Source: Macrostomum lignano
Taxonomy: Eukaryota
Assembly: GCA_002269645.1 (NCBI GenBank)
Contig: NIVC01001607.1
Span: forward strand, 124,001 to 188,000
Direction of reading: 5' to 3'
DNA length: 64,000 bases
Shown: positions 36,755 to 60,100 of the stretch, in pieces
How positions within the stretch are numbered: position 1 is the first letter of the stretch
Layout of the letters: each line of letters begins with the position of its first letter
Program-made: the position numbers and the translations under genes
The notes under the pieces: model-generated
Seen by the model: the letters and a program-made list of their open reading frames with translations, nothing else
The model's database searches: none
Told to the model about the DNA's origin: nothing

Positions 36755-37935
36755 TCTTTCAGCTAGTGTAGCCTTCTGTGCAGACGTGGACACTTTTCAA
36801 TGTTGCTGAGTGTACTAAATTTTCTAGATGCAGAATTGTGCTTAGAATGAATCTCATTGGACTCCTCCCAGCTTTTTCAAAGCATTCTGTTAATTTCGTT
36901 TGCTAACAATAATGAAGTCAATAATTTTTGCTCATCTTACAGAAATTTTACGTAAAACGTGTTGTAATCTTTCTATTGTCCTATTTTGTAGGATTGCATG
37001 CCTGCGTACAGTATTGGCGCGCCTGTTGTCAGCGGAATTATCTCAGCGTTGGTTGTTGGACGATGTTGACGAAGCGGCTGCGCTAGGATGGCCTACAGCT
37101 GTCCTGTAGTTATTGCTGCTAATTTTAGGGACATTACTCGTACCGCATTAACGCTAGTAGCTCCGAGGGTCGCATATTGCTCAAATCAGTGTGCAGTTGG
37201 CTCAGAGCCATTTCAAAATTGATTTGAGCAATCTTCGGCCTCCAACTTTTGTAGTCACCTGTCCCGAGTATTGAGTAGTCCCTGATTCAATGCTCTGCCT
37301 GTGCCGTTGCCATAGATCAGAGGCGGTGTTTTGACCATAGACCAAAGTAGAAACATTTGGTTGAACACGATTGGCAGTTTCTTAGGATAAGTCTAAAATT
37401 CTTGAGTAAGAATGAAAACTGCTATATTTTATTTTGCATACCGTGAAACGGGGTCTTACCATAGACACAAAGTCGAACAAATCCAACTTCATTTAACCAC
37501 GTTTCCATCCCAGATAGCTAATTTTCGTACTCCATGACATAGCGATCTTAGCCTATGGCAAAAAAATTGGCGAGCGCAGATGTGAGCATACGCGAGCTGG
37601 AGTAGAGATTAAGCAGCATCGGTTTGATGAGGCACGGGCGGATGATGGGGGAACAACGCCCATCTATTTAGGCCGCGCCCTCTCTCTGCCTGCCTCTCTT
37701 TCACTCCTGGCATGGCTTTTCTACAGATTGGCTTCCCCAAGACAGTTCTTTAAGAATCCAATGAGGGCCGCCCGCCCCGTGTCAGCTGCATACCATTTCT
37801 GTGTCCTTCCTCAGCGCTCCCTGCTGCAGTGAAATTCAGCTTCGATTCGAGTGATTTTTTCATGGCCAACTAAACCTGGAGAGCGGCAGTGAAAACAGAA
37901 GCATTCCTGCGGACCGTGAGTGAGCTGTCTGCATG

Positions 37936-38231
<296 letters not shown>

Positions 38232-38316: not shown

Positions 38317-41300
38317 ATGGGCGCCAGCGCAAGTAGCCGCTACCGCAGCTGCTGCCGCCGGCGCAGAAGCCGCAGCCAATCAACACCGGCGGGCGGTGGC
38401 TCCAATGGAGTTGAGAACCCGGCTTACTCCAGCTCTGTACCGGGGACAGGCGTAGCTGCTGCAGCGGCAGCGGCAGCGGCGGCAACTGTGGTGTCAACCA
38501 CCGTCACTACCGGGCAGTTCAACGAGGTGACACCAGCGACTCCGGCAAGAGCCGCCATGGAGCTGAAGGCAAGGCTGGCCGATCGTGAAAGCGACTGGCT
38601 CAGGGAGGAGGACGTCTACCGAGTGTTCGTGCAGACCTCCTGGCGGGTCGAGTCCTCCGTGCTCACTCTGGTAATCTTGAGAAGCTTCAGGCGCACTAGG
38701 GCAATAAATTTTGGCGTTAGAAGTTGAACTTATGATAAGAAAGCGCGCAGGGAGCGGTGGCGGCTCTGGGAAACCCGTGAGATAATCGTGGAAGCTGAGT
38801 TTGCCAGAGCCGCAGCGTTTAATCAGGCCAAAAAGATTTGATAAGATGTGTTCGTTAACCAGGGGCTGTGCAAGGACTTGTGCGAGCATGCTGTAGAGAA
38901 GGGCTCGGCACACTCCGGCCTGCGGGCCACACGCGGCCCGTAGTGTCTTTCCGGCCTTCGAGTCCTTCGAAACTTCACAATAGTAATCCGGCCCGCTCAA
39001 GGTTTGGGTCTCTTCTCTATTCACTCTCCTCTCTCCCCTCTCCTCTCTCCTCTCTCCTCTCTCCTTCCTCTCTCCCCTCCTTTAAGAGGAATGCGTACAG
39101 GACTGGACTTTTCTTTTTTAATAGACTTCCTATCTACCTCAACACTGCAACTGCCCTGCTATGCCATACTGACTCCATTCCTGCCCACTCTCCTCTCTCC
39201 CCTCTCCTTCCTCTCTCCCCTCCACTTTCCTCTTCTCTCCTCTCCTCTCCTCTCCTCTCCTCTCCTCTCCTCTCCTCTCCTCTCCTCTCCTCTCCTCTCC
39301 TCTCCTCTCCTCTCCTCTCCTCTCCTCTCCTCTCCTCTCCTCTCCTCTCCTCTCCTCTCCTCTCCTCTCCTCTCCTCTCCTCTCCTCTCCTCTCCTCTCC
39401 TCTCCTCTCCTCTCCTCTCCTCTCCTCTCCTCTCCTCTCCTCTCCTCTCTCTCTCCTCTCCTCTCCTCTCCTCTCCTCTCCTCTCCTCTCCTCTCCTCTC
39501 CTCTCCTCTCCTCTCCTCTCCTCTCCTCTCTTCTTTTCTTTCCCTTCTCTCACTTCTCTCTTCTCTGATCCCATCTCTCGTCTCTCCTCTCTCTTATCTC
39601 TTAGAATCTTCTATTCTCTCGCCTTTCCCTTTCTTATCTGGCCCACAGCCATGAGCTGAATTTTTTATCTGGCTCTTGAGGGAAAAAACGTTTGCCGACA
39701 CCTGCTGTAGAGGCTTAATACAGCTTCATGTTGAAATCCTTAAACAGAACTCTGATGGTTAGCTAGCTACCGCACAGCAACTCGCTGGGAGAGTTACGAT
39801 CGATATTGGAATAATTCGAGTTAAAACTGTGATGATGGAACTTCAGCTGTGTGCAGCTTGATAGCACACTTACTTTCTAGCCCAAGAAATGCCTTGGTCT
39901 GCCTGCAGTTGTGCACTTTAGAATCATGGGTGTGGTCAAAATATGAGTGAGAGGCTACAGATGATGGGGGAAGAGAATTAAGAGTTTATATTATATTATG
40001 GTGTACATGCAGCATGCAGGAACCGACAGAGACAGACCAGGACATTGACAGCTGTTGACAGGAGCAGTGACAGTAGACAGCAAAAGTGCAATGTACTATC
40101 AGAGTTTCAGTGTTGTTTTCATGTACATGTGTACTTGTACATTCGTTTTTTTAACATAGACTATTGAGAGCGCTTGTCAACTAAGCGACTGACAACTGCT
40201 GAAAGCTTGAGGTTTTTCAAGGCCACGATTCAACGATAAACAAATCAAAGATCAATTTGCAGCTCACAGCCGAGTTGGATACGAACAAGGCAGGCATGGA
40301 ACAGGGTCGCAAGAACGAGTTTGTGCAGTTGTCGGGCCACTCCGGTGAGTTGATATGCTCGTTGAGCTCAACTGATTGCACCTGCGTGACCATCGTTGTA
40401 ATCTGATTTTATGTACGGAAAAGTACTGTAAGAGTCAAGTTTTAGGCATCTCGTAACTTCCGCAAGGTTGTTTGTCAAAAGTGTCAATTAGAACTTGTCT
40501 TATAGCAACACTAGAATTTTTAGCATCACATTTCTTTTTGTTGCATTACGGGACGTTCTGTCACATATCATTCTTAGCATCACGTGAAGTTTTAAGCGTC
40601 CTGTGACCTTAATATAAGGAGTAAATGCAAAGCACTTTAAGCTTAGCCTATAGGTGGGGGTTGTAGCCTAAGGTTTAGAGCGTCAGACTCACGACTTGAA
40701 GGTCGGTGGTTCGATTCTCGACCCACTTGGAACAATTGTGTCCTTGAGCACTTCACTCTGCATTGCTTCAGTTCACCCAGCTGTAAAATGGGTGCCAGCA
40801 TTAGCTGGGGTAATTGAGGCTGTGTATAGCGACCCCCTCCCCCAGTCCTTGGACTGAACAGCCGTACGCAGCCTTCAGATGCGCCGCGCAATAGCTGCGG
40901 CTGAGCTGTCAGTTGCACATCTGCCCATTAGGGTCATTAGCATCATCCTTAGTAACACAAACTGATACTCGTAGATTTTATCCGCATATTTCAAGCAATA
41001 AAATTCTATTCGAACAAACTGCTAATCAGGCGCATTTGCGGTCTCCAGCCCGTGGACCATCCTGAAGCGTCGAGATGCCTCGGAGTCGCACGAGCTGTCA
41101 GCCTACAGGCAGCTGATGCTGCAGGACAGCGGGATGCAGCAGTTTGTGCCGAAATTCCATCGAGAAGTACAGCTCAGTGGCGAATGTGAGTTTTGCTTTG
41201 TTATCATACTTCTCATGCGGACTTGCTAACAGAAATAAGATCCAACCGCATATCATTTGCGTAGCACTTTCGATACGCTTGAGTATATGCAATATAATAC

Positions 41301-44241
41301 AGCTCACTCCCTACTAGTGGGGGAATTGGAAGCCGTTGGGCGGATTGAGAAGGCTTTAAGTATAATGGGGAAGGATTGGGATAGATAGGGAAGGATTGGG
41401 ATAGATGGGGAAGGATTGGGATAGATGGGGAAGGATTGTTACAGATGGGGAAGGATTGGGATACATGGGGAAGGATTGGGATAGATGGGGAAGGATTGGG
41501 ATAGATAGGAAAGGATTGGGATAGATGGGGAAGGATTGGGATAGATGGGGAAGGATTGGGACAGATGGGGAAGGATTGGGATACATGGGGAAGGATTGGG
41601 ATAGATGGGGAAGGATTGGGATAGATGGGGAAGGATTGGGATAGATGGGGAAGGATTGGGATAGATAGGAAAGGATTGGGATAGATGGGGAAGGATTGGG
41701 ATAGATGGGGAAGGATTGGGATAGATAGGAAAGGATTGGGATAGATGGGGAAGGATTGGGATAGATAAGGAAGGATTAGGATAGATAAGGAAGGATTAGG
41801 ATAGATAGGAAAGGATTGGGCTAGATAGGGAAGGATTGGGATGGATAGGGAAGGATTGGGCTAGATAGGGAAGGATTGGGATAGATGGGGAAGGATTGGG
41901 CTAGATAGGGAAGGATTGGGATGGATAGGGAAGGATTGGGCTAGATAGGGAAGGATTGGGATAGATGGGGAAGGATTGGGCTAGATAGGAAAGGATTGGG
42001 ATAGATGGGGAAGGATTGGGATAGATAAGGAAGGATTAGGATAGATAAGGAAGGATTAGGATAGATAGGAAAGGATTGGGCTAGATAGGGAAGGATTGGG
42101 ATGGATAGGGAAGGATTGGGCTAGATAGGGAAGGATTGGGATAGATGGGGAAGGATTGGGATAGATGGGGAAGGATTGGGATAGATAGGAAAGGATTGGG
42201 ATAGATGGGGAAGGATTGGGATAGATAAGGAAGGATTAGGATAGATAAGGAAGGATTAGGATAGATAGGAAAGGATTGGGCTAGATAGGGAAGGATTGGG
42301 ATGGATAGGGAAGGATTGGGCTAGATAGGGAAGGATTGGGATAGATGGGGAAGGATTGGGCTAGATAGGGAAGGATTGGGATGGATAGGGAAGGATTGGG
42401 CTAGATAGGGAAGGATTGGGATAGATGGGGAAGGATTGGGCTAGATAGGGAAGGATTGGGCTAGATAGGGAAGGATTGGGATAGATAGGGAAGGATTGGG
42501 CTAAATAGGGAAGGATTAGGATAGATAAGGAAGGATTGGGATAGATAGGGAAGGATTTGGCTAGATAGGGAAAGATGGGGAAGAATTGGTGTTGATGAGA
42601 AGGAATCTATTTTATCAGTTGTACACACGCACATGACTTTAAAGACTTGAGGCATGCATACTGTATCTGAAATGTTCCAATAGCTTACTTAGAACTGGAA
42701 GACCTGATGCAGCACTTCTCGAATCCGAGCATAATGGACGTGAAGATGGGCTGCCGCACGTTCCTGGAGTCGACACTGCCAACCCGAGTTGCGGCCCGAC
42801 CTGTACAAGAAAATGACGGCCGTGGACCCGAACCAGCCGACAGAGGAGGAGAGAAGAGCTGGAGCGATTACCAAGCTGAGATACATGCTGGTAAGCTGCA
42901 TAGAGCTTACAAATTCAATAATTCAGCATACGAGGTATTGTTTTTCGAATTGGAGGAAAAATAACTTATTAGGATAAATCAAACTTTTTAGTATATAAGA
43001 AATGAGTACAAAATAAACTTTAAATTATTTTTCACTGCAGTTTCGAGAACAGGAGAGTACTACAGTCTCTCTGGGCTTTCGTTTGGAAGCAATCAAGGTT
43101 ACAAATATTAACATTTACTGTCTTAAAGCGATAATATAATTATAATTTTTTCACTTTACTAATCCGTAGTCTCTATTAACTTTTCCAGACAAGAGATCCG
43201 GAATCGTGTTCAGCGCACAGTCGTCGCTTAAAAACTATAAAAACGGAGTCCGAGGTATGAAAAATGTATTTCTGTACTAAATAAATTGCATCGGCCGGGA
43301 TTCGAACCCTGGACCGTCCGGGTGGCAGGCGAGCATTCTACCACTGAACCACCGATGCTTGATGATGTGGGGCTGCATTGCTTGCGTTGAGCGCAAAATC
43401 TATTGGAAACAATGAGTAACATATAGATTTTTGATGAGAGTACTTGATCGGTTTCTCATGCTCAACTTGTTTACCAAATCTCGTAGGTTTTGCCCGTCAT
43501 TCACTACTTTTGCGCCTACAACGCCGCTGTGATGCGTTCGTTTGCTGCCAGACTGCGCGAACTCAAGTCAGCGCTAGAGAAATCAGACTTCTTTGCCAGG
43601 CATGAGGTGAGAAAACCGAAGTAGAAAATGTTTCGGAGGCTGGAGAGACTTTGAGACGCTAGAGAGAATTAGCCATTGAGTATCCACGATTAAGTTGTCA
43701 TGGCGACACAGCCATTAAATAAAGCCAAAGTTTTGCATGATTACTTAGCTCGTAGTTTGTATTTGATTTTAACTGCCTTGTTCATATACATCAACATATC
43801 AGTCATGTGATGTGGTGTCATTGTTAATGTGGTGTGAACAAGTTTTGCAATATTGGGTATTCTACGATGTATTGTTACATGTGAATGGTAAAGTTGTACA
43901 GTCAAAACCAATGCATACTTACAATAATGCTTGTTCATGAGTAAATGAATTGCATAGAGAGAGTCAATTCTGAATAATGTGAATAATCCTAACGGGACAA
44001 ATGGTACAACCTACACATTGAATTTCTGCAGTTCATCGGCTCTTCCTTGCTGTTCCTGCACGACGCGTCTCTACGTGCTGGCGTCTGGATGATCGACTTT
44101 GCTAAGACCCTCCCGAGGCCGGACGGCGAAAGACTGCAGCACACCGTACCTTGGACACCTGGCAGTCACGAGGACGGCTATCTGATTGGGCTAAATAATC
44201 TTATTCGACTTATGGAAAGCGCATCCGGCGAGTACGTTTGA
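38317..44241 (+). CDS. IP3K: Inositol-trisphosphate 3-kinase (IPK family), 8 exons, apparent frameshift in exon 4
   Basis: Exons 38317-38670, 40263-40344, 41030-41185, 42684-42890, 43041-43097, 43189-43254, 43487-43606, 44032-44241. Motifs [64 protein letters not shown]. Joining exon 1 is phase-consistent but is the least certain part. Confidence 0.88.
39232..39530. repeat. (TCTCC)n pentanucleotide microsatellite in IP3K intron 1
   Basis: Seen directly; embedded in a wider CT-rich tract (~39010-39640). Confidence 0.97.
40653..40935 (+). mobile_element. tRNA-derived CORE-type SINE, copy 1
   Basis: A-box and B-box (GGTTCGATTC) head; central GTGTCCTTGAG...CTTCAGTTCACCCAGCTGTAAAATGGG resembling the MIR CORE; tail ending CATCTGCCCATTAGGG shared with the other two copies. 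Confidence 0.85.
41365..42585. repeat. 20-bp G-rich minisatellite (GGGAAGGATTGGGATAGATR), ~1.2 kb, IP3K intron 3
   Basis: About 60 tandem copies with variant blocks. Confidence 0.97.
43287..43358 (-). tRNA. trnG-GCC: tRNA-Gly(GCC)-like gene, probably degenerate, antisense in IP3K intron 6
   Basis: GCATCGGTGGTTCAGTGGTAGAATGCTCGCCTGCCACCCGGACGGTCCAGGGTTCGAATCCCGGCCGATGCA. Acceptor and D stems pair; two mismatches in the anticodon stem and one in the T stem. Confidence 0.8.
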
Positions 44242-46502: not shown

Positions 46503-47522
46503 TGTACAACGATAACTTCTAGTAGTCCTTGAGTAGAATAATATCAATAGATAATAGTTGAAGATTCCAGAATCTTCCGGAATATTCTATACATTATAAC
46601 TTGTAACTGAAATAATATACATGTAATAGTTTGTGACGCGTTAAATAATGCTTAGAAAGGCGAAGTTATTTTATGTATGTATTAATTTTACTTTTTGATG
46701 GCATACAAGCTGTTGAAACCCGCGGATTTTGAACCCGGGGAACTTAATTTCCCGGAATTATTAACTTTTGTCATTTAACTTTAACTTACAGAAAAAAAAT
46801 AACGATTTTTGTTAACTAGTTAATACATAAAAAATTTAACGAAAATTTAACGATTTTAAAAAAAATTTAGCTAGTTAATTAACTAGTTAAACAATTAACT
46901 AGTTAACGCCCAGCACTGGTTAGGACTCTTCATAAAACAATGAGTCAACTAGCACGCACTACCTACAATAAGACTTGTAGTTTAGTATTTACCAAAATGT
47001 TAAAGGATGCTTTCTACTCTCTCTATATGCTTACATATACTATATGGAGAGATATATTACAGTCCAGATAAAACAAAAACTTAAAAAAATTTAGACACTT
47101 TTTGAATCATGCATCTCGTATGCCGGACATACCAAAATAATTACGCTTGTACGAGCATATTTGAATTACCGTTTTGCACCATTTTAAAAGCCACTGATAT
47201 TTCTAAGAAACTCAGTGAGCTCGTGGCCTCGTGCAGACAGTACGACTAATCATGGCACATGCATACGCATAGGACGGGTTTATACTTTAATATACACTTG
47301 CATACCGAGAATTTTTTATTTTATACAGAAAAAATCAGTTTCCATCAACAGCTAGAGCAACTTCTTATTGGTCTTTGATTCTATCTGAAGCCGAGGAATA
47401 TGTCGCTATGCCGCTTTATTGAGTATTTATTCAAACGCCAAAGTCCATCGAGTAGATTTGCATCTATAGTAGAATTTACATACTTTGTCTATGGCTATAT
47501 TTAATATGATTTAAGCCGCAAG

Positions 47523-47602
47523 GGGTTAGCGAAATGGGCGGCAACGCCTCCTCGCTGCATCTGGATGCACAGAGCCCCCTGCAGCTGAGTCAAGTCAAGT
47601 AA
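47523..47602 (+). mobile_element. Extreme 3' end of the LOA-like LINE family
   Basis: TTAGCGAAATGGGCGGCAACGCCTCCTCGCTG...CTGCAGCTGAGTCAAGTCAAG matches 3088-3166. Confidence 0.85.
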
Positions 47603-48177
47603 GAATTAATATAGCATTTAAAATTTACTTTATCAAAAGTCTTCAAATGTTCAAATACAGCATTAAAATAAAAAGTTTGAATGAATATGGTATATTATAT
47701 TAGAATAATATACATTATTACTTAGTCAAATTATATGTATTCATTAGATTTGAAAATTTCATAGTCTCACTATAGGGCATTTGTATTTTAAATATGTAAT
47801 ACTGTTAGATTGATTTATTTTGAGCCAGAATCTATAGTATAGATATATATTTTGTTTTGTAAATTATGATTTCAATACAGCTTCTTGTTACTTTTAAAGG
47901 TTAAACAAACTAGTTGAATTAGTTTTACAAAATTAAAGAAATCCATTGTTAAATTTTATAAATGCACACCTACTTGTTTAACATCAGTCAAATATAGCTA
48001 GAACATTAGATGCTTTCTACTATACCAGAATCAAATAAACTTTTGAGATATTATCATTGAACTTTTAGCACTGGTAAAATATTTTGAAAAGAAAAAGGAA
48101 AGTTTTAGAAATCTCTATCAATAAGTTTCATTGTAAAAAAAATATTTATAATTGTAAGTTAATATTAAACTTCACAG

Positions 48178-48606
48178 TCTACAGAACCAGACAGAAGTCG
48201 CATTGGCAGTGTCAGGGTTGCCTGGGAGAACAGGCTCAGTGACCTCATTGGTCACCGGGTTGACCTCTCGGGCCAGCGTCTCGCTACCACCCTGGTTGTG
48301 CACGAGGTTCTTGGCGCCAGTCTTCTATTTGGCGCCTGGACGCTGTGCTATCGCCTGCGGTTCACCTCGCGCCAACTGCTACCACTGCTGCCGGCTTCAG
48401 CTAGCGCGGCGCACGAGCGCGGCGCCACCGCAGCCCGGCGCGCTCTGGCCAGATGGCCGCGCCTTCGCCGCCGAGTGTCCGACCCGCAGCGCCTGGTGGT
48501 GAGCGCAGCTGAGAGCTTCCTGTTGAGAAAACTGTGCGGACCTGTGCTGGTGCCAGCAAAGCTGTTAGCGGCTTATTATCTGGCTGGCGCTGTGTGCTCT
48601 CACTGA
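48178..48606 (+). CDS. Probable terminal exon of an uncharacterised membrane protein
   Basis: Acceptor TTCACAG at 48171-48177, then 143 open codons in GC-rich sequence set in AT-rich flanks. Hydrophobic segments LVVHEVLGASLLFGAWTLCY and PVLVPAKLLAAYYLAGAV. Upstream exon not identified. Confidence 0.6.
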   Translation, partial: STEPDRSRIGSVRVAWENRLSDLIGHRVDLSGQRLATTLVVHEVLGASLLFGAWTLCYRLRFTSRQLLPLLPASASAAHERGATAARRALARWPRLRRRVSDPQRLVVSAAESFLLRKLCGPVLVPAKLLAAYYLAGAVCSH

Positions 48607-48639
48607 GCTGCTCAGCTTTTATTCATTTTTTTCTCCCCT

Positions 48640-49930
48640 TGTCCCCCCAAGAATTCTCCCCTTGTTCCCCCCGAATTCTCCCCTTGTTTCCCCAAATTAC
48701 CCCATTGTTCCCCGAATTCTCCCCTGCCCCCCCCACGAATTCTCCTCTTGTCCCCCAAGAATTCTCCCCTTGTTCCCCTCGAATTCTCCCCTTGTTCCCC
48801 CGAATTATCCCCTTGTTCCCCGAATTCTCCCCTTGTTCCCCTCGAATTCTCCCCTTGTTCTCCCCGAATTCTCCCCTTGCCCCCCGAATTCTCCCCTTGT
48901 TCTCCCCGAATTCTCCCCTTGTTCCCCATAATTCTGCCCTTGTCCCTCCAAGAGTTCTCCCTTGTTCCCCTCGAATTCTCCCCTTGTTCCTCCCGAATTC
49001 TCACCTTGTTCTCCGAGAATTCTCCCCTTATTCCCAAGAATTCTCCCCTTGTTCCCTCCGAATTCTCCCCTTGTTCCCCGAATTCTCCCCTTGTTCTCCG
49101 AGAATTCTCCCCTTATTCCCCAAGAATTCTCCCCTTGTTCCCCGAATTCTCCCCTTGTTCCCGAATTCTCCCCTTGCCCCCCCGAATTCTCCCCTTGTTC
49201 CCCCTGAATTGTCCCCTTGTCCACCCCGAATTCTCTCCTTGTCCCTCCAAGAGTTCCCCCCTTGTTCCCCCCGAATTCTCGCCTTGTTCTCCGAGAATTC
49301 TCCCCTCATTCCCCTCGAATTCTCCCCTTGTTCCCCCCGAATTCTCCCCTTGTTCCCCCCGAATTCTCACCTTGTTCTCCGAGAATTCTCCCCTTATTCC
49401 CAAGAATTCTCCCATTGTTCCCTCGAATTCTCCCTTGTTCCCCCCGAATTCTCCCCTTTTTCCCGAATTCTCACCTTGTTCTCCGAGATTTCTCCCTTAT
49501 TCCCAAGAATTCTCCCCTTGTTCCCTCCGAATTCTCCCATTGTTCCCCCGAATTCTCCCTTGTTCCTCGAATTCTCCCCTTGCGCCCCTCCACCGAATTC
49601 TCCCCTTGTCCCCCAAGAATTCTCCCTTGTTCTCCCCGAATTCTCCCCTTGTTCCCCCATAATTCTGCCCTTGTCCCTCCAAGAGTTCTCCCCTTGTTCC
49701 CCTCGAATTCTCCCCTTGTTCTCCGAGAATTCTCCCCTTATTCCCCAAGAATTCTCCCCTTGTTCCCCGAATTCTCCCCTTGCCCCCCCCGAATTCTCCC
49801 CTTGTTCCCCCTGAATTCTCGCCTTGTTCTCCGAGAATTCTCCCCTCATTCCCCAAGAATTCTCCCCTTGTTCCCCCTGAATTCTCCCCTTATCCCCCAG
49901 AATTTTTGTTTCCCCGAATTTTCCCCTTGT
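48640..49930. repeat. ~21-22-bp C-rich minisatellite (CCCCGAATTCTCCCCTTGTTC)
   Basis: About 1.3 kb of degenerate tandem copies, most containing GAATTC. Confidence 0.95.
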
Positions 49931-51756
49931 TCACCTGAATTATTCCCTGAATATCTGAATTCTATCCCTATTCGGCTGTATTTCTCCATGTTCTCCTAAA
50001 TTATCAATTCCAATTGTTCTCAAGAGTTCATTGTTTGTTCAGCATCATTTCTTAAACCCTGTTCACTCTTTATATATGATATATCCGCCTGGTCTTTTCA
50101 GACTCCTTGCTTCAATTTTTATGTTTTCAAAAGTTGTTCCTTTTGCCATTTTGTCCCCGAAAAGCAACGGCAAGCCAATGTTCTAATTCGAGTTCACAGT
50201 TACTACCGATTGTAAAATTTATTTTGGTATAATGTAATAAGTTTTTTTAATCAACTTGAGTTGTTTTTACCAGCTATAGTTTGTGCGAACTCGAAATGCA
50301 GAAGACTGGATTAACAATAAATATATTCAAAATGCTTTTAAGTATATATATATATATATATATAAGATACGCGTTACTCATTTTTGAAGAGATAGCAGCG
50401 CTGATCATACGAAAATGGGTGAAAAATGTCCTACTTATCTGCAATGGAATGCAGCGACTCGGTTTCAGCATTCTCTGTGATTACATCATCAGTCTCAGAA
50501 TCCGATGTATGCAAAATGTCCATGGTTGTAGCTGATTTACTTTTCAATAAAATGATGCACTACTCGTATTAAGGAGGTGCAGTGCTTTCTCTTTCAAAAA
50601 GGCCTGTTTGCAGATTTTAAAGTGAACTGCAGTGTCTATTGCTAGATATCGAGTAGCTAGTGTACACACTGCATAATCTATTCAGAGAGCATTAAGTGAA
50701 ATGCACTTTGAAGCTGTTTTTTTCGACCCAAGATTTGTCCAAGCCAAGTATAAAATGCTCCCTTCTCGGCTAGAAAGGCTTTGCACAGGGGCGCATTAAG
50801 ATTCTAGCTATAGTCTATGGCCAGCCCTGCTGACCATGTCGGCAGGAACGGAGCTTTTGTATTTCTAGTACTACTACTTCTAGTACTTTTGTATTTACAT
50901 ATGAGATCAAACTTTGATAGCTCAGATCCTACAAATCTAAGAAATAGTATCCTGTATGTGTTGCACTTTTTGAGCCTCAAAAAGTTGAAGCCTGTGTTTA
51001 AAAAAGATCCGCTTAATAGCTAAATCGGCGTATGGAATGGAGGGATTCTTCGTTGTCAAGATTATCTGGGTTTAGGTCAAAATAAGGCGAAGTCTTTACT
51101 TGATTTTAAAAGGAATTTATATAGGAATATTTTCTTACCTTGTACATGTACATTGTCGCTTCCTAATGGTTGAAGCAGGGGTCAGCTGTTACTTGCTGGA
51201 GCATTCTCATTGATTTTTAACATTCAGAATTCAGAATAGAAACTTTGGTGCCTAGAATGTATCACTTCACCTGTCCATTAGATCAAAAGACCTTAAATGA
51301 CGACTCGAGAGCTATTCTCAAGTTAGCAGGTACTCGAAAGGAAGTGATGTTTTATCTCTAGACAATTGTACTTAGTGGCAGCTTTGGGCGGTTTTTTTCT
51401 CTAGAAGCAAAATAGTTTTTTGTTTGTGCGAAGTAAACTTCTTTACCTCCATTTCCAAGAAATTAGCGGCGACAAAAACAAGCAAAATTGCACTCGCATT
51501 TTTAGACCGTCAGTCATATCTGAACGCATGCATACTAATAGTTATCTCAGCGCAACATGAACATCGTGAAAGGCAGATAAAACGTCAGTGATAAAAATAC
51601 ATCAGCTAGCCGTGGAATTTCCACGGATTTGCCAGGCTAGACTTATAGACGCAGCGTTTATAACAAGGGCCATAAAAAACTCTATTAGGGAATCTCAGGT
51701 GGCTATACTTGACTTTGAGGGCATTCTAAACCACTGACGTTCAGTTTGCCGGCATT

Positions 51757-52292
51757 ATGTGCATGCAGAAGGAATTGGTTTTCAAAGAAAAAGCCAAAGT
51801 CGACGAGGCTCTAGAAGTGCTCAAGCCAGGCTGGGCTGTGGCCTTTGACAGAGGCTGCTATCAGCACTTTGCTATCTACATCGGCAAAGGGTACCTGAGT
51901 AAATTGGAAACTGGAGAAATATCCATCCCAGGTGCGTCCAGCCCGTGCGTCACATCATTTGTCAACTATCCAACTCAAAGAAAGACGGTAAAGGCGTCAT
52001 TTCCGTTGAAGACTTCCATACTGTTGCCAAGGACTCAAAGATAATCGTGTTTGAGTGCAGCTGCTCCGACCTGCAATGTGAAGCTGTCATTGAGACGAGT
52101 CTCGGGTGTCTTGGCGAAACGCACTACAGCCTGCAAAAGAACAATTGCGAGCACTTTGTGAGGCGCATTCTGGAAAATGAAAGCGTGAGCTATCAGGTGA
52201 AGCGACTCGGTGAAAGTATCCGTGACCTCTCAGGCTTCTGGCGCAAGGCTAGCACGTCTAGCAAAGCATCACGCCTTAACCCCGACATGTAA
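51757..52292 (+). CDS. LRAT/PLAAT (HRASLS, permuted NlpC/P60) domain
   Basis: KPG...YQHFAIYIGKG and YSLQKNNCEHFV...SYQV align to the PLAAT consensus. The two frames join through a 41-bp GT-AG intron at 51891-51931. Strong donor GTAAGT at 52289, overlapping the stop codon. Confidence 0.82.
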
Positions 52293-52334
52293 GTGAGTTT
52301 TCATTTCCTCTATTGATGCATGGCTTATTGGCTA

Positions 52335-52613
52335 GGGGCCGTTGTAGCCTAGTAGTTAGAGCGTCGGACTCACGACTTAAAGATCGGAGGTTCGATTCTC
52401 GACCCAACTCGGAACAATTTGTATCCTTGAGCAAGACATTAACTCTGCATTGCTTCAGTTTACCCAGCAGTAAAATGGGTGCCAAGCATTAGCTTGGGTA
52501 ATTGAGCTAGGTGTGGCGACGTCTCAGTCCTTGGACTGAACAGCCGTACGCAGCCTTCAGATGCGCCGCACAATAGCTGCGGCTGAGCTGTCGATTGCAC
52601 ATCTGCCCATTAG
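52335..52613 (+). mobile_element. tRNA-derived CORE-type SINE, copy 2
   Basis: Same head, CORE and tail as copy 1; lies between the donor at 52289 and the acceptor at 52686. Confidence 0.85.
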
Positions 52614-53111
52614 AGCAGGTGTTATCAATTATTACTATTATTAATTATTCGCTAAGTAAATTTCTAGCTTTGCTTTCCAATCGCAGGTATGTGTTTCTAC
52701 TTCGAGAACCAGACAATCACGTCGCTGCAGAGACCAGAAGCAGAGTTCGCATCGGTCCTAAATTTGCCTACGCCAGACTATCGCCATTGAGTGACCAGAA
52801 GGTCCGCTCTCTTGAGCGATGGCCCACAAAGTCTCGCCAGACCGGTAAAGAAAAGCTGTTTTATTAGTAAGCATGAAATTCGTAAATCCTGGCTCTAAGA
52901 ATAAATCCCAAACATACATCTCAGGTGGTCGGTCCATCGAAGGCCTTAAAGGAATAGAGTACAAGGAGACTGTACCCCTAGCTGCAGACCGTACGTAAGT
53001 TACCACCGTTCTGCTTGTCTGCCTTGCATTTCCGTTGTAAATTGAGGCACGGGACCCTTTTATTTTTTTGCATGTGAACTTCAGAAACGAACAGGAAGAA
53101 CTGCTCTCAGC

Positions 53112-54019
53112 ATGGGAATTGCAGCAGCACGAAGACCAGAGTTTGATGGTGCCGGGGAACTTGAGCCCAACCGTCCAAACACGTCAGTATACACACAAGT
53201 CGCTGTTAATAATTTACTTGAACTTACCGTACTCTTAACTTCACTTGCAGCAGCGTTGGTGGCCTTGCTGGGACTCAGCCACGAGTGCCCCTGCTGTCAT
53301 ACACAATGACCTCCCCTCAGGGTGTCTGTCTGGTGATTAACATCAACAAATACTCCGCTTCCTCTGGGTTTAACTGCCGCCCTGGCTCAGAGCTGGATGT
53401 CACTCGCATCAAGGAGGTCTTTGGACGGTTGGACTTCGAATTGAGAGTTGCTGAGGATCTGCCAGCCTACGATATCGATAAATTGCTGCACGAAGTTGCC
53501 ATTGAGGAGGAAATTATGCACCACGGCTGCTTTGTCTGCTTTCTCATGGCTCACGGCAATGAAAAATCAATCTTTGGCAGCAACGGCAATGCACTGGAGC
53601 TGAACCGCATTCTAGAGACTTTCCAGTCGGACATCTGTCCGGGCCTACTCGGCAAGCCAAAGATATTCTTCGTACAGGCCTGTCGAGGCCAAACCATTGA
53701 AGTCTGCGAAGAATCGACTGACAGCGCTCCGATGGAAAGACGATTCAGTCCAAAGGGAAGCGACTTCCTGGTCTGCAGATCGAGCACCAAGGACTCACCG
53801 GCCTACAGAAACAGCACGACGGGCTCCTTCTTTGTTCAGACCGTGTGCAACGAGATCGAGAAGCATCACTCGGATGAAGACATCAAGGAAATAATGACCA
53901 GAGTGAATGCTCAGATGGAGCGAGCTCGTTTTCCGATCCATTCAACGATCGCGTGCACGATTTCAGAGTTCACCTGCACCCTAACGAAAAAGTGCCTCTT
54001 GAAACCGTTGTACCAGTAA
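53112..54019 (+). CDS. Caspase (peptidase C14A); minimal model exons 53112-53182 and 53251-54019, possibly extended upstream to the LRAT domain
   Basis: GVCLVININ, RPGSELD, FLMAHG, GKPKIFFVQACRG, ESTD/S linker, SDFLVCRSST...YRN...GSFFVQTVC. Catalytic His and Cys and the P1-Asp pocket Arg/Gln/Arg are present. Confidence 0.93.
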
Positions 54020-54599
54020 GGACTCAATTTAGTTACGACTTCATCTATATACCAGTATATATAAATCTAAGCTTCATTGTTCTACCTATAGCTAGAGTAC
54101 ACAATTTTACGTTAATACAGCTACAGGTATCGACGTAATTGTTGACAGGCCGAAGTCGTGTTTTCTGATTGCCATTTAAAATAGAAGACACAGTTTTCAT
54201 TTTTTATAGGTATAGATTATCATTCTGTACAATGTCAATTCATTTGTTAATATGAATTCATGTGAAAAAAATTCCATTTTCGAAATTAATTGTCTCTCAA
54301 ATTGCTTATCCTCATTTAATCTTCAAAGTTGGCCCTCACCTGTGTAATAAATAACACTCGAGGCATTCGATATTTACTTTCTCTTCTATTGAAGTCGGTT
54401 TTTTCTATTAGGCTTTTACGAGCTTCCAAAAAAATCTTACACTGTTCAAGATTTTATGCAGATCTTTCAATCCAATTGAATCTCCCGGAGGTTAACTTTG
54501 TCTGGTAAATGTCATCTCATCTCTCTCCTATTTTCCTTTCTCTTTAATTCTCTACCATCTCCCCACTTCACTGTCTTCTCTCTCTCTCTACTCCACAGT

Positions 54600-55475
54600 T
54601 CTCTCTCCCTCTACTCCACTTCTCTCTCCCTTTACTCCACTTCTCTCTCCCTTTACTCCACTTCTCTCTCCCTTTACTCCACTTCTCTCTCCCTTTACTC
54701 CACTTCTCTCTCCCTTTACTCCACTTCTCTCTCCCTTTACTCCACTTCTCTCTCCCTTTACTCCACTTCTCTCCCCTTTACTCCACTTCTCTCTCCCTTT
54801 ACTCCACTTCTCTCTCCCTTTACTCCACTTCTCTCTCCCTTTACTCCACTTCTCTCTCCCTTTACTTCACTTCTCTCTCCCTCTACTCCACTTCTCTCTC
54901 CCTTTACTCCACTTCTCTCTCCCTCTACTCCACTTCTCTCTCCCTTTACTCCACTTCTCTCTCCCTTTACTCCACTTCTCTCTCCCTTTACTCCACTTCT
55001 CTCTCCCTTTACTCCACTTCTCTCTCCCTTTACTCCACTTCTCTCTCCCTTTACTCCACTTCTCTCTCCCTTTACTCCACTTCTCTCTCCCTTTACTTCA
55101 CTTCTCTCTCTTTACTCCACTTCTCTCTCCCTTTACTTCACTTCTCTCTCCCTTTACTCCACTTCTCTCTCCATCTACTCCACTTCTCTCTCCCTCTACT
55201 CCACTTCTCTCTCCCTCTACTCCACTTCTCTCTCCCTTTACTCCACTTCTCTCTCCCTCTACTCCACTTCTCTCTCCCTTTACTCCACTTCTCTCTCCCT
55301 CTACTCCACTTCTCTCTCCCTTTACTCCACTTCTCTCTCCCTCTACTCCACTTCTCTCTCCCTTTACTCCACTTCTCTCTCCCTTTACTCCACTTCTCTC
55401 TCCCTCTACTCCACTTCTCTCTCCCTTTACTCCACTTCTCTCTCCCTCTACTCCACTTCTCTCTCCCTTTACTCC

Positions 55476-55530
<55 letters not shown>
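54600..55530. repeat. 21-bp CT-rich minisatellite (ACTCCACTTCTCTCTCCCTTT) followed by (CT)n
   Basis: Seen directly; it produces the 400-aa SLSLYST pseudo-ORF. Confidence 0.97.
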
Positions 55531-55532
<2 letters not shown>

Positions 55533-56585
55533 CCACAGTTCTCTCTCATCTCTGCTCCACTTCTCTGCCCTATCACCATTTCCTGTTTCCTTCTCCTCAC
55601 CCTCTCTAGTATCTATTCTCTTTCTGTATGGCATGCTCGTACATGTACTTGTCTGCGTCAAATATTCCGCTTGTTGTTGAGAATAGACTTATCTTCATGA
55701 ATACTATTTATATAATCAATAAATTTGTGAACAAATATTTCCATTATTATAAATGTCGTAATAGTTTATGATTCGGTTTATTAATTAGAAATTATAGATA
55801 ATTTTATTAAAATCACAAGTTAGGGTAAACTTAAAGTCAGATCTGAATGCAACTTTGTGTTAACTTTGCCAGCCTAAAGTGCTTCTCTGCAAAGGTCTTG
55901 AATATTTAGAGCTTTAATTGTTTACTTTAAAATATTCATTACTAATTTGTTTCGAATATGCAGATTTCATGTCTCGCTACAGTAACACGGAGCTGTACAA
56001 AAAAGAAATTGGAAAATCGACAGTAATTAAGGAAGTACATTGAAACAAAATAAAATAGTATCTTTCATATAGTACCGGAAAAACCTGAATGATTCTCCCT
56101 AATTTCAAGGCATTTACAGGTAGCAAAGTACGCTCGCTCGTATTATTCCAAATGTAAAAAGGTGCATAAAAGTTTTCCAGTTTTTAAACGTTTTCTCAGA
56201 AAAATGTACCTTTAAAGATGCACATAATACACGACAAAAAAATTCAATGAATATTACATTTTAAAGCAAAGTATAAATTGATGATCAATTTTTGGCCACA
56301 AAATTTAAAACACGCCCAATACCTTGGACTCATTCAAAAGTAAAAGGCAGCATCGACCGAGCTGTATGCCCTGACCTGTAGACCTGTATGCCCGGTAGAC
56401 CAAAGCTTCAATTTTAAGTTTCAGTCTCGATCGAGCTACTCTTAGTCATATATTAAGCGTGTAGCTAGTCACTGCCGAAATTAAGTCTGGTTTTCAAACT
56501 TTCGAAAAATGTGAATTTGAATTATTTAAATATGGAGGCGTACACTAACAGGGAAGATCTATGCTTCAATGTATTCATCTTTTGT

Positions 56586-57102: not shown

Positions 57103-60100
57103 TCAGGCCGCCACATTGTTTCTCGACCAGTCGGGATTGTAGGGCGGCGGTTTCTCGCCGTTGTCGCCGCCGCTGGCTCCAGCGGACGTCGCCGGCGCCG
57201 CAGCGTCATTGCCGCCAGCCTCGAAGCCTAGGTTGGAGTAGGTGGAGTAGGCTGGCGCGGTGGCTGTGTAGGGCGGAGCGGCGGGGGAGGCAGTGAACGG
57301 AGGGGGTGGCGGCGGCATCGGGTAGGACGGCGGCACTCCGGCGGCTTCGCCGATGACGAATGGTCCAGCGTTGACGTTGGAATTGGCGGCATTAAAGTTG
57401 CTCTGTCGTCGAGTTCGTCTAGCGGCAGCGTTCCGACGAATGCAGCAGACAAAGACGACGATGAGGCTGACCAGGATGACCAGAATGAAGCCGACAGTCA
57501 GCACGATGGCAATCATGCTTATGACGTTGCTGGCTGAATTTATCTGGCTTTTAAGGTTGTAGTAGGACTCGGTTCCGCCCTTGGGCATGTAGCACACGTA
57601 CTGCCGCCTGGTGTTGCAGTTGTCTTTGTAGAAGCGACCGCTCTGGTAAGTGATGCACTGGCAGTCGGAGCTGGTCTGACTGCACAGGCGGCCGGAAATG
57701 CTGCTGCAATATTGTAGACCAGTTAAGAATCAGAATCAGTTGAGGTCTAACGTGTTCATCGAAGTTGTGAAAAATTGTGTGAGAGTACATATTGTATTTT
57801 GTAAGGAAGACATTTAATCAGTCTGTAAGCATTCAGCGTTGAATCTTAAGGACGACTTAAGCATCAATTATCCAGTCGTTCAATTATACTCTGTAAACTC
57901 AATCTGATGGCAATGCGAAGAAATTTGGTAACACCTATTAACAATATCTGCAACTATGACCAAGGTATCAACTACAAAAATCTTTGATATGAACTGTTAA
58001 AATAGACTCACTCAAGCGAGTTGTACTTGTTGAGGAACTTCAGCTCGTCGTTCTTCTCGTACATGCCGACCCAGTATGTCAGTCGCGGGCTAACAACGCT
58101 CGAGGGCGCCGAGAACAGCTCCGCCGAGATCGAGTCGTAGTTGAAGTTGCCCATGACGAGGTTGGCCAGCAGCATGTTGCAGGCCTTAGCGGACTCATCG
58201 TAGGTCAAGTTCAGGGCCAGTCTAGGCACACCGTAGCAGTACCCAGCGGAGCTGGAGACTTTGTACCAACCAGTTGGGCAATCTGAGGTTTCCAGATGTT
58301 CAACGGTCATCCGGACGCCAGTTGCCTTACCGGCCGGCGTTGATTTGGTTTTCTGACGGACAGTGAAGCTGCCGCTGCTGATGCCTAACTGTCGGTAGAG
58401 AGTCCCGGCGCTGTTTAGAGAGATCAAGTTCTTTCCTCTGGTGCTGGTGCCTTCGTAGACATCGAACTCGGCCTGAGAAAGAGACGTAAACAGATTGTGA
58501 CGAATTGTTCCGGTTAGGGACTTGCTGGGCGAAGAAATATCGACATTTTCAGTCAACCTAGTTGTAGCCCAGTGGTCAGAGCGTCGGACTCACGACTGAA
58601 AGGTCGGATTTTCGATTCTCGACCCAACTCGGAAGAATTTGTGTCCTTGTGCTAGATACTTAACTCTGCATTGCTTCAGTTCACCAGCTGTAAAATGGGT
58701 GCCAGCATTAGTTGGGGTAATTGAGGCTGTGTGGCGACCCCCCCCCCAGTCCTTGGACTGAACAGCCGTACGCAGCCTTCAGATGCGCCGCGCAATAGCG
58801 GTTGCACATCTGCCCATTAGGGTAAGGTGTCATAAATTTTTTATTATTGTTATTATTATCAGTTGCCTAAAAACAGGAAAAACAGGAGTTAGCACCCCCC
58901 CAGGCGATTGACCTCTCGGAACGTTATCGGTACTTCCGTTCTCATGGCCGCACATGCATTAGAGAGGGCCGCAAATCAAGGTGATTGTTGATCTTAAGCC
59001 AGCAAGAAAGCTAGCAGTTATAATCAATTCTGCTGAACTCTGAGCACCGCACTTACATTCTTCGCAGGCACACACATTCGCACGGGGGCTGTACAGTGCG
59101 GCCCTGACTTTCTCAGCGTCAGATATATGCTAACTCTGTCTTTCTGTCTTTGGTGCTGGCCCTCTCGTGTGGGTTGGGATCGCTTGTCATGCCCGCCGCA
59201 GGTGAAGTTTCGTGCACCAGCCGCAAATTAATGTGACTTGGCACGGAAGCGAAGTCGGCTACTTGTTGCCCGTACATGTATACATGTAGCACTAGAGATA
59301 TAGTACCTTATAAATTCCATGGAATAATCAGACTTAGGCTTGGGACTCAAAACAAATTGCTTTTATTCTCACTTCGCAGTTGGAGTTTCACGAGCTATAC
59401 TCTGGTATTAGATTTTAAGAAACTTGGAGACCTCATACTATCTGCAAACTGACAAATCTAATGAAAGTACAACCTGGCGTCTTGCCTGATTGGGGTCTCA
59501 GTAATTTTATTCGAAAAATCAAATCAAAATAAATTTTATCAACGCTCATTCTTATCGAAGATGCTGCTTACTTGTCTGCACAAGTGATCGACCACTTCAT
59601 ACGTACTTTTTTCGTTTTGTTTTCTGGTGCATGCACTCAGCAACACGTTAAAGTAGTTTCCACCCCCGAAATCAATGGTCAACTTTGTTTAGATATCAGA
59701 CCCAAGTGACGCAACTCACGCCACGCATGCGGTTCTCGTCTCATCTTAAAAATGTACTTTATGAAAAAGATCCAGCCTTACCAGAAAAGAATTGAACTTC
59801 TATAACGGATCATCGACATTGAAAAGTCGCCACCCTTTGACCCAGTGAGCAGTGTTTTTCGACCAGCGTCTATCACCTGGCCAACCATTTTGATCTTAAA
59901 AATGCTTGAAAAAACCATGAAAACCGGGCGGCAGCGTCAATCCATCCAATCTTTGCCCTCCGCTCTTCCCAATCTCTCCTCACTCTGGCGCAAGTTGCGT
60001 CGCTCAAAAGACAATACTGAGCTAGAATTTACTGCGCACTCTCAAAGGTGGCGACTTTTTAATGCACATCGAAAAATCGCCATCACAGAAGATTCCATCT

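Follow-up and report, generated by a model that had tools for sequence, protein, structure and literature searches.

Caspase prodomains set where and how the protease switches on, and nearly all of the well-studied ones are death-fold adaptor domains. The PLAAT enzymes, which are thiol acyltransferases/phospholipases, form acyl-thioester intermediates with phospholipids. They are reported to relocate to organelle membranes and rupture them (PMC10760033). Among lophotrochozoans, the survey by Krasovec et al. (2024) treats each new caspase prodomain as noteworthy and lists flatworm ankyrin repeats (ANK), a kinase-like domain in Macrostomum lignano, and PARP, Z-binding and ROC domains in brachiopods and annelids (PMC11463336). 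That survey sampled M. lignano and gives only the kinase-like prodomain for this species, no other unexpected prodomain in platyhelminths, and ANK-caspases as restricted to parasitic flatworms (PMC11463336). Here we analyse a 64,000-nt window (the whole stretch of DNA examined), about positions 124001–188000 of contig NIVC01001607.1 in the Mlig_3_7 assembly (GCA_002269645.1) of M. lignano, a free-living flatworm. Within positions 51757–54019 of the window, an LRAT domain (PF04970) is followed about 1 kb downstream, on the same (+) strand, by a complete caspase domain (PF00656).

The best explanation of the full set of observations, to which we assign a probability of roughly 0.75, is that this locus is one copy (Mlig004795.g1) of an M. 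lignano gene family, with five exons encoding a 542-aa LRAT–linker–caspase protein. An initial annotation, made from the letters of the window alone, had proposed an LRAT–caspase fusion at these positions. Its observation was partly confirmed and its interpretation partly supported. The pairing of the two domains was recovered by Pfam (PF04970, E 1e-16; PF00656, E 4e-44), with the LRAT His in YQHF and the LRAT Cys in NCEHF. That the two domains are joined in one protein is supported by the sequence comparisons below, which draw on annotated sister and paralogue gene models rather than on the splice path first proposed.

A five-exon gene model

The copies compared were the window, two sister loci (L001, encoding PAA80090.1, here P0001, and L004, encoding PAA49434.1) and two paralogue loci (L002 and L005). 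A five-exon model yields PAA80090.1 exactly on L001 and PAA49434.1 exactly on L004. These sister copies, BOX15_Mlig004795g2 (UniProt A0A267G1Y2) and BOX15_Mlig031264g1, respectively, carry the window gene as sister haplotypes or homeologues: across 2265 nt, their DNA shows 99.6% identity to the window, their exon structure is the same, and the same genes flank them as in the window, an inositol-polyphosphate-kinase gene upstream and a lectin-like gene downstream. They differ in having an intact 542-aa open reading frame (ORF), whereas two bases are missing from the window copy.

In window coordinates, all on the + strand, exon 1 (51757–52288) is a single uninterrupted exon that opens with the ATG at 51757, upstream of which lies an in-frame stop, and that carries the LRAT domain (51820–52172; aa 22–139 of 542) through to the end of the LRAT frame. 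This frame closes, as had been noticed initially, at a TAA within the splice donor CGACAT/GTAAGT (52289–52294). Intron 1 (52289–52686; phase 2, GTAAGT...CAG) would close an LRAT-only ORF at this TAA (52290–52292) if it were retained. Exon 2 (52687–52844) encodes the first part of the linker and holds its sole conserved motifs (YVFLLRE and KFAYARLSP). It is separated by intron 2 (52845–52924) from exon 3 (52925–52994), which is 70 nt long and whose 3′ boundary is set by the strong donor GTAAGT at 52995 instead of falling at 52990. Exon 4 (53085–53182) begins behind a strong acceptor, TTCAG, at 53084. After intron 4 (53183–53250), which like intron 2 is identical to the corresponding intron of the annotated sister gene, exon 5 (53251–54019) encodes the end of the linker and the caspase domain (53321–53992; aa 311–534) and terminates with the stop TAA at 54017–54019. 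A tentative candidate poly(A) signal, AATAAA, lies at 54346–54351, about 330 nt past the stop. Intron 1 contains neither AATAAA nor ATTAAA, and the only other such signal in 51701–54600 is at 52900, in intron 2.

The path proposed initially had six exons, which are indeed all bounded by GT-AG introns, total 1572 nt and translate without a stop; the resulting 523-aa product has its best protein matches in M. lignano. Three of its five introns (52289–52686, 52845–52924 and 53183–53250) match the annotated sister gene exactly; the remaining two junctions are wrong. The supposed 41-nt intron at 51891–51931 is coding sequence for YLSKLE(T/A)GEISIPG (YLSKLETGEISIPG), which is kept in the paralogue, aligns to PLAAT3 YVVHLAPPSEVAGAG and occurs in four annotated proteins (P0001, P0007, P0003 and P0011). 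Removing it by splicing would shift the frame in the intact copies. The older ML2 assembly has an ab initio model (UniProt A0A1I8GKZ5, P0010) with an identical false intron. The junction 52991/53094 likewise gives way, in the five-exon model, to the strong pair 52995/53084. Each false junction offsets one missing base in the window copy. A stop-free GT-AG path is easily found and is weak evidence alone; here it absorbed two frameshifts. A PEFD/G cleavage site proposed in the linker exists only in the shifted frame, and the true linker reads NEQEELLSAWELQQHEDQSLMVPGELEPNRPNT.

Two missing bases in the window copy

The first break lies in exon 1, where the window has CCC at 51942–51944 and the sister copies have CCCC or CCCT (AGCCC-GTG versus AGCCCCGTG in L001 and AGCCCTGTG in L004). 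The second lies in exon 4, where the window has GGGG at 53154–53157 and the sister copies have GGGGG or GCGGG (CCGGGGAA versus CCGGGGGAA in L001 and CCGCGGGAA in L004). The initial annotation had warned that one base might be absent; a base is missing, but from this G run and not from the C run at 52972–52975 that had been given as an example. The sole GenBank coding sequence (CDS) of the window copy, BOX15_Mlig004795g1 (PAA65912.1; 53112–54019, +, with the intron 53183–53250), encodes a 279-aa, caspase-only protein. Once the two breaks interrupt the frame, this is the longest ORF that remains and the one TransDecoder would choose on a frameshifted transcript; the model probably owes its short form to two indels in the assembly.

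At both breaks, the intact copies disagree with each other (AGCCC[C/T]GTG and CCG[G/C]GGGAA), and the window is without exactly the base at which they disagree. As the 2265 nt contain about 25 variable sites, the probability that both breaks would fall on such sites by chance is ~1e-4. Their coincidence with sites that differ between the intact copies suggests consensus errors arising from reads of mixed haplotypes. The DV1 line of M. lignano is a hidden polyploid in which large amounts of sequence are duplicated in nearly identical form (PMC5730564). On the strength of these alignments, we think it likely that the missing bases are consensus or polishing errors of a PacBio assembly among several haplotypes that are ~99% identical. 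If they are assembly errors, the real sequence of the locus probably has an ORF for the complete fusion.

The competing account, that the window copy is a genuine pseudogene, takes the deletions as real and the LRAT part as dead, leaving at most the 279-aa caspase-only product, so that only the sister copies would encode the fusion. Both frameshifts are present in the sequence as given; they outlasted Pilon polishing with Illumina and RNA-seq reads, although polishers do badly where reads map to multiple places. The window copy also carries three more private substitutions, at 51514, 51654 and 51910, and the redundancy of copies in DV1 means that the loss of one would be tolerated (PMC5730564). 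Independent mutations, however, would be unlikely (~1e-4, as above) to delete the sole C/T and G/C differences at those spots, and models derived from the ML2 assembly for the same mosaic haplotype (P0010 and P0002) carry one deletion or the other, never both. We therefore regard a genuine pseudogene as unlikely and retain assembly error as the preferred origin of the two breaks.

Over the gene region, the window differs from L001 by eight substitutions and two 1-nt indels. A further locus, L003 (NIVC01001607.1 167112–188019), equals window positions 43112–64000 base for base. Across the surrounding 8.1 kb (46920–55023), gap openings between the window and L001 (36) are as common as mismatches (38), which suggests much residual indel error; other ORFs of the window may thus be broken artificially.

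The window copy is also a mosaic, L001-like at nearly all variable sites up to ~53200 and L004-like from 53267 (to 54519), a pattern that recurs in the ML2-derived proteins P0002 and P0010. The flanks of all three copies are 95–99% identical, which is compatible with either a natural recombinant or a chimeric consensus. Given the recurrence of the pattern, the mosaic is probably a real third haplotype, formed by recombination or gene conversion, rather than a chimeric join. Larger differences among the copies include a ~250-nt insertion in intron 1 of L004 (aligned at window position 52631), lacking in both the window and L001, and small deletions together with one tandem insertion in the 3′ flank of L001.

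Evidence for one gene rather than two

The alternative that must be weighed against a fusion is that the annotation is an artefact and that LRAT and caspase are neighbouring genes, either trans-spliced operon cistrons or products of read-through, with separate mature proteins. In M. lignano, precursors spanning several genes make up ~7% of assembled transcripts (PMC5730564), an LRAT-only protein would end at once at the donor TAA if intron 1 were retained, and LRAT-only genes adjoin the paralogue. Four kinds of evidence speak for a single gene.

First, the GenBank CDSs of both sister copies derive from transcripts, and each encodes 542 aa that include both domains (PAA80090.1 and PAA49434.1). 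The GenBank models were built from RNA-seq and de novo transcripts (StringTie/TACO), with TBONE making cuts at experimentally mapped trans-splice and poly(A) sites and TransDecoder supplying the ORFs (PMC5730564). TBONE left the transcripts in question uncut. We also considered whether the '.g1/.g2' suffixes mark genes of one transcription unit and rejected this: a shared prefix denotes transcripts clustered at 95% identity (PMC5730564).

Second, the paralogues BOX15_Mlig027562g1 and Mlig017636g2 (PAA65113.1 and PAA73134.1; 539 aa; L002 and L005) have the same LRAT–linker–caspase order, and their proteins (P0003 and P0011) share about 47% identity with P0001 from end to end. Intron 1 lies at the same codon position in both lineages, in phase 2 before [YF]VFLLR; intron 2 is in phase 1; the first three intron phases are shared; and exon 3 is 70 nt in the same phase in the P0001 gene and in the paralogue. 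The paralogues share the VFLLR and FxYAxLxP linker motifs as well as the LRAT His and Cys. They differ in having four exons rather than five. Their caspase domain has QTSQK in place of QACRG (Cys to Ser) and no longer carries the S1 Arg of AYRNS, which probably leaves them without proteolytic activity. The paralogue lacks the stop within the intron 1 donor, and read-through there would enter a poly-Tyr tract; there is thus no sign of a conserved LRAT-only isoform. Nor does intron 1 of the window offer an LRAT-only transcript either of the two poly(A) hexamers sought.

Third, the linker is open. It comprises ~150 aa (about aa 160–300), evolves fast and has little conserved besides VFLLR and KFxYAxLxP; a Pfam search of the true linker found no domain. 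The linker ORF is nonetheless open at four loci. Once three or four canonical GT-AG introns are removed, the reading frame is continuous at all four, in two lineages only 47% identical, and the chance that linkers of 109 and 80 codons would be open and in a compatible frame is ~1e-5.

Fourth, substitutions among the sister copies are mostly synonymous in the two domains. The LRAT domain has 5 synonymous and 2 non-synonymous changes (ratio of non-synonymous to synonymous polymorphism, pN/pS, 0.11), and the caspase domain has 4 and 2 (pN/pS 0.14; binomial P 3e-4 for both domains jointly), with the linker about neutral (pN/pS 1.3). Taken together, the transcript-derived models, the paralogue architecture, the open linker and this substitution pattern make two separate genes very improbable.

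The surroundings of the paralogue contain further LRAT sequences. A neighbouring 315-aa LRAT-only gene, at L002 9828–11441 and L005 10063–11860, has a run of hydrophobic residues behind NCEHF, and the same range includes an ORF rich in Cys and His that matches zf-UBR below threshold (22 bits against a cut-off of 25). L002 12143–12583 also gives a weak LRAT-like match. These neighbours place the paralogue in a tandem cluster of LRAT genes.

An unannotated third LRAT–caspase pair directly precedes the paralogue gene at L002 2851–5228 (NIVC01001680.1). Its LRAT His and Cys are lost (SWQTGVY and SAELFEHF), and its caspase keeps QACRG but is broken across three reading frames in the assembly; the pair may be a pseudogene or may reflect more indel errors. 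It has HIFLLE behind an AG acceptor in the phase of exon 2, a hint only, as the match falls short of significance, with 12 of 500 shuffled sequences scoring as high.

The LRAT/PLAAT-like domain

The LRAT domain scores 61.5 bits against PF04970 in the initially proposed protein and 58.4 bits in P0001, with a gathering score of 24.3. Its matches in the PDB are PLAAT2, PLAAT3 (4dot, E 5e-8), PLAAT4 and an LRAT chimera, with E values from 5e-8 to 2e-5. His37 (YQHFAIY; 51865–51867) and Cys131 (NNCEHF; 52146–52148) align to the PLAAT3 catalytic residues and are invariant in all four annotated paralogues. A further invariant residue, His66 (SSPVRH; 51951–51953), lies 17 residues past Lys49, after an insertion, and is also found in the neighbouring LRAT-only gene.

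The absence of a hydrophobic anchor, noticed initially, holds for the corrected model: the top 19-residue Kyte–Doolittle mean is 1.15, compared with 2.08 in the PLAAT3 tail, and this highest window sits inside the caspase core, with no anchor after the LRAT domain. A C-terminal anchor of this kind is usual in canonical PLAAT1–4, and by this sequence criterion the predicted protein is an LRAT-domain protein and not a canonical PLAAT.

The caspase domain

The caspase domain (peptidase family C14A) scores 151.5 bits against PF00656 for the segment alone and 149.1 bits for P0001, with a gathering score of 21.4. The catalytic dyad, His388 of MAHG (53552–53554) and Cys431 of QACRG (53681–53683), aligns to H121 and C163 of caspase-3. 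We defined the S1 pocket by Arg179, Gln283 and Arg341 in caspase-1 numbering; its counterparts here, Arg330 (53378–53380), Gln429 and Arg473 (in AYRNS), align to R64, Q161 and R207 of caspase-3. ESTD444/S aligns with IETD175/S of caspase-3 and is the predicted intersubunit cleavage site. No CARD, DED or Death domain turned up when the full protein and the linker were scanned against Pfam at E values up to 1, and P0001 and P0003 gave no Ank match.

Distribution and prior description

In a profile search of 1.84 billion representative proteins, full-length matches were found only in M. lignano. The other top matches all covered the caspase part alone, and an LRAT domain was absent from the 150 best of them, although a weakly scoring fusion may lie further down. 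A query with LRAT plus linker matched only one M. lignano protein, and a query with LRAT alone matched none even at E 10.

At the N terminus, the nearest caspase domains among the top matches (P0013, P0022 and P0039) are preceded by Ras/Roc, kinase plus Ank, and Ank regions, and several other matches contain tandem arrays of two or three caspase domains; this clade of caspases seems to acquire fused domains unusually readily. The nearest caspase domain is that of the M. lignano protein P0004 (BOX15_Mlig000705g2; 723 aa, partial), a protein with Ank repeats whose protease domain is 45% identical. This is an ankyrin-repeat caspase in a free-living flatworm, in contrast to the restriction to parasitic species given in the 2024 survey (PMC11463336).

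That this architecture is not known to have been described, as the initial annotation had it, holds for the literature searched. Searches for the gene identifiers, for LRAT with Macrostomum, and for an LRAT or NlpC prodomain on a caspase found no paper; GenBank and UniProt already contain the fused proteins, both Pfam domains included. As far as we have searched, the architecture is therefore deposited yet not described, and the gene is uncharacterised.

Several points weigh against the reading of this locus as one copy of a functional LRAT–caspase gene. The window ORF, with true splice sites, ends after 95 codons; as assembled, the copy is frame-broken and could be a pseudogene. Three repaired versions of the window protein had no exact match in a collection of 15 billion proteins, which leaves no independent transcript-derived copy proving the repair. 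Transcript support for the fusion is second-hand, through the published annotation pipeline. The representative-protein profile search contained no LRAT–caspase orthologue outside M. lignano. In a phmmer alignment, the third residue of the PLAAT3 triad, His35, aligns to Lys49 (Glu in the paralogue P0003), and without a membrane anchor, membrane targeting is not evident from the sequence. The predicted structure of the 542-aa protein, from a 4-sequence alignment, is unusable (predicted local distance difference test, pLDDT, 32; predicted template-modelling score, pTM, 0.28).

Possible roles of the LRAT prodomain

Given a real fusion, the LRAT domain may replace the CARD or DED of a long-prodomain caspase. 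It would bind membrane phospholipid, or form an acyl-thioester with it, and thereby concentrate zymogens on the membrane. Zymogens clustered in this way would undergo proximity-induced dimerisation, leading to self-cleavage at ESTD444. In a second role, the LRAT domain may itself damage membranes as an effector, in the way that PLAATs act on organelles. The Cys-to-Ser paralogue pair Mlig027562/017636 is a candidate FLIP-like regulator that would be recruited through the same prodomain. By analogy only, this arrangement would resemble that of caspase-8 and cFLIP, in which an active member and a dead paralogue share DEDs, as here the two would share one prodomain. We infer this mechanism, including the coupling of lipid sensing to proteolysis that had been suggested at the outset, from domain content and conserved residues.

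A different role for the LRAT domain in a real fusion is also conceivable. It may be no lipid recruiter but an inert interaction or oligomerisation prodomain, or else an effector or cargo freed by cleavage in the linker, for example at LAAD252 or HED271. The lack of a membrane anchor and the Lys or Glu at the canonical third triad position agree with this, as does a linker that holds Asp sites, among them the two just named, and evolves freely. Further, the third copy at L002 has lost the LRAT His and Cys and keeps QACRG, and P0003 keeps the LRAT residues without the caspase Cys. These opposite losses mean that the LRAT and caspase activities are separable in evolution. Against the scaffold version, however, His37, His66 and NCEHF are invariant across the annotated paralogues, and this invariance, together with the low pN/pS of the LRAT domain (0.11), points to retained catalysis rather than a mere scaffold. 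We hold a non-recruiting LRAT domain to be possible without being likely.

In its fullest form, recruitment to lipid would make the protein a lipid-coupled caspase module: an active LRAT prodomain would self-acylate on, or remodel, phospholipids and so nucleate caspase activation on a target membrane, which it may also rupture, with the Cys-to-Ser paralogue as a FLIP-like brake. We put this forward as speculation that is quite unlikely to be correct in all its parts. Candidate target membranes would be those of a damaged organelle, of engulfed prey or a pathogen, or of a dying cell. If the module exists, it would be a caspase activation route needing no death-fold adaptor, and a PLAAT-type enzyme as prodomain would couple lipid chemistry and proteolysis within one polypeptide. 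RNA interference can be applied to M. lignano by soaking. Transgenesis has been published for the species (PMC5730564), so the idea is testable.

Other elements in the window

A ~270-nt repeat with a tRNA-like 5′ end (ggccgttgtagcctagtagttagagcg...ggttcgattctcgaccc) occurs in intron 1 (52341–52613) and again at 40660–40931 and 58561–58848, with ~87% identity. It is probably a tRNA-derived short interspersed nuclear element; neither ARAGORN nor Rfam called it a tRNA. The only RNA found by these two programs was a tRNA-Gly(GCC) at 43287–43358 (−; Rfam, 49 bits), unrelated to the gene and lying inside the upstream inositol-polyphosphate-kinase (PF03770) call at 43112–43605 (+).

Minisatellite and microsatellite arrays lie at 54575–55566, 48631–49948, 41368–42581, 39188–39534 and 37925–38231, with units, respectively, of 21 nt (×47, starting ~550 nt downstream of the gene), 22 nt (×60), 20 nt (×61), CTCTC (×70) and CTGT (×76). 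These arrays explain the extreme GC and AT skew in their bins.

Comparison with known systems

As a protease, the predicted protein is closest to caspase-3 and caspase-7: caspase-3 is the closest solved structure (E 1e-37), and all catalytic and S1 residues are shared, along with a matching intersubunit site. Unlike these effector caspases, it has an N-terminal region of ~300 aa, and this region contains no DED or CARD.

That N-terminal region resembles PLAAT/HRASLS proteins and LRAT in bearing the permuted NlpC/P60 fold signature, with the His in the beta2 motif (YxHWAIY of PLAAT3 aligned to YQHFAIY) and the nucleophile Cys in NCEHF. It departs from PLAAT/HRASLS in its lack of a C-terminal hydrophobic anchor, an insertion of 8–17 residues between the His positions, an ambiguous third triad residue and the fused caspase.

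Finally, similar to the non-canonical caspases of lophotrochozoans, the protein places a canonical caspase behind a long, recruited N-terminal domain that is not a death fold. Its prodomain is not ankyrin, as in the ANK-caspases of platyhelminths, but an LRAT/PLAAT-type enzyme domain, a kind not listed in the survey (PMC11463336). We file the gene as a variant among caspases with unusual prodomains.

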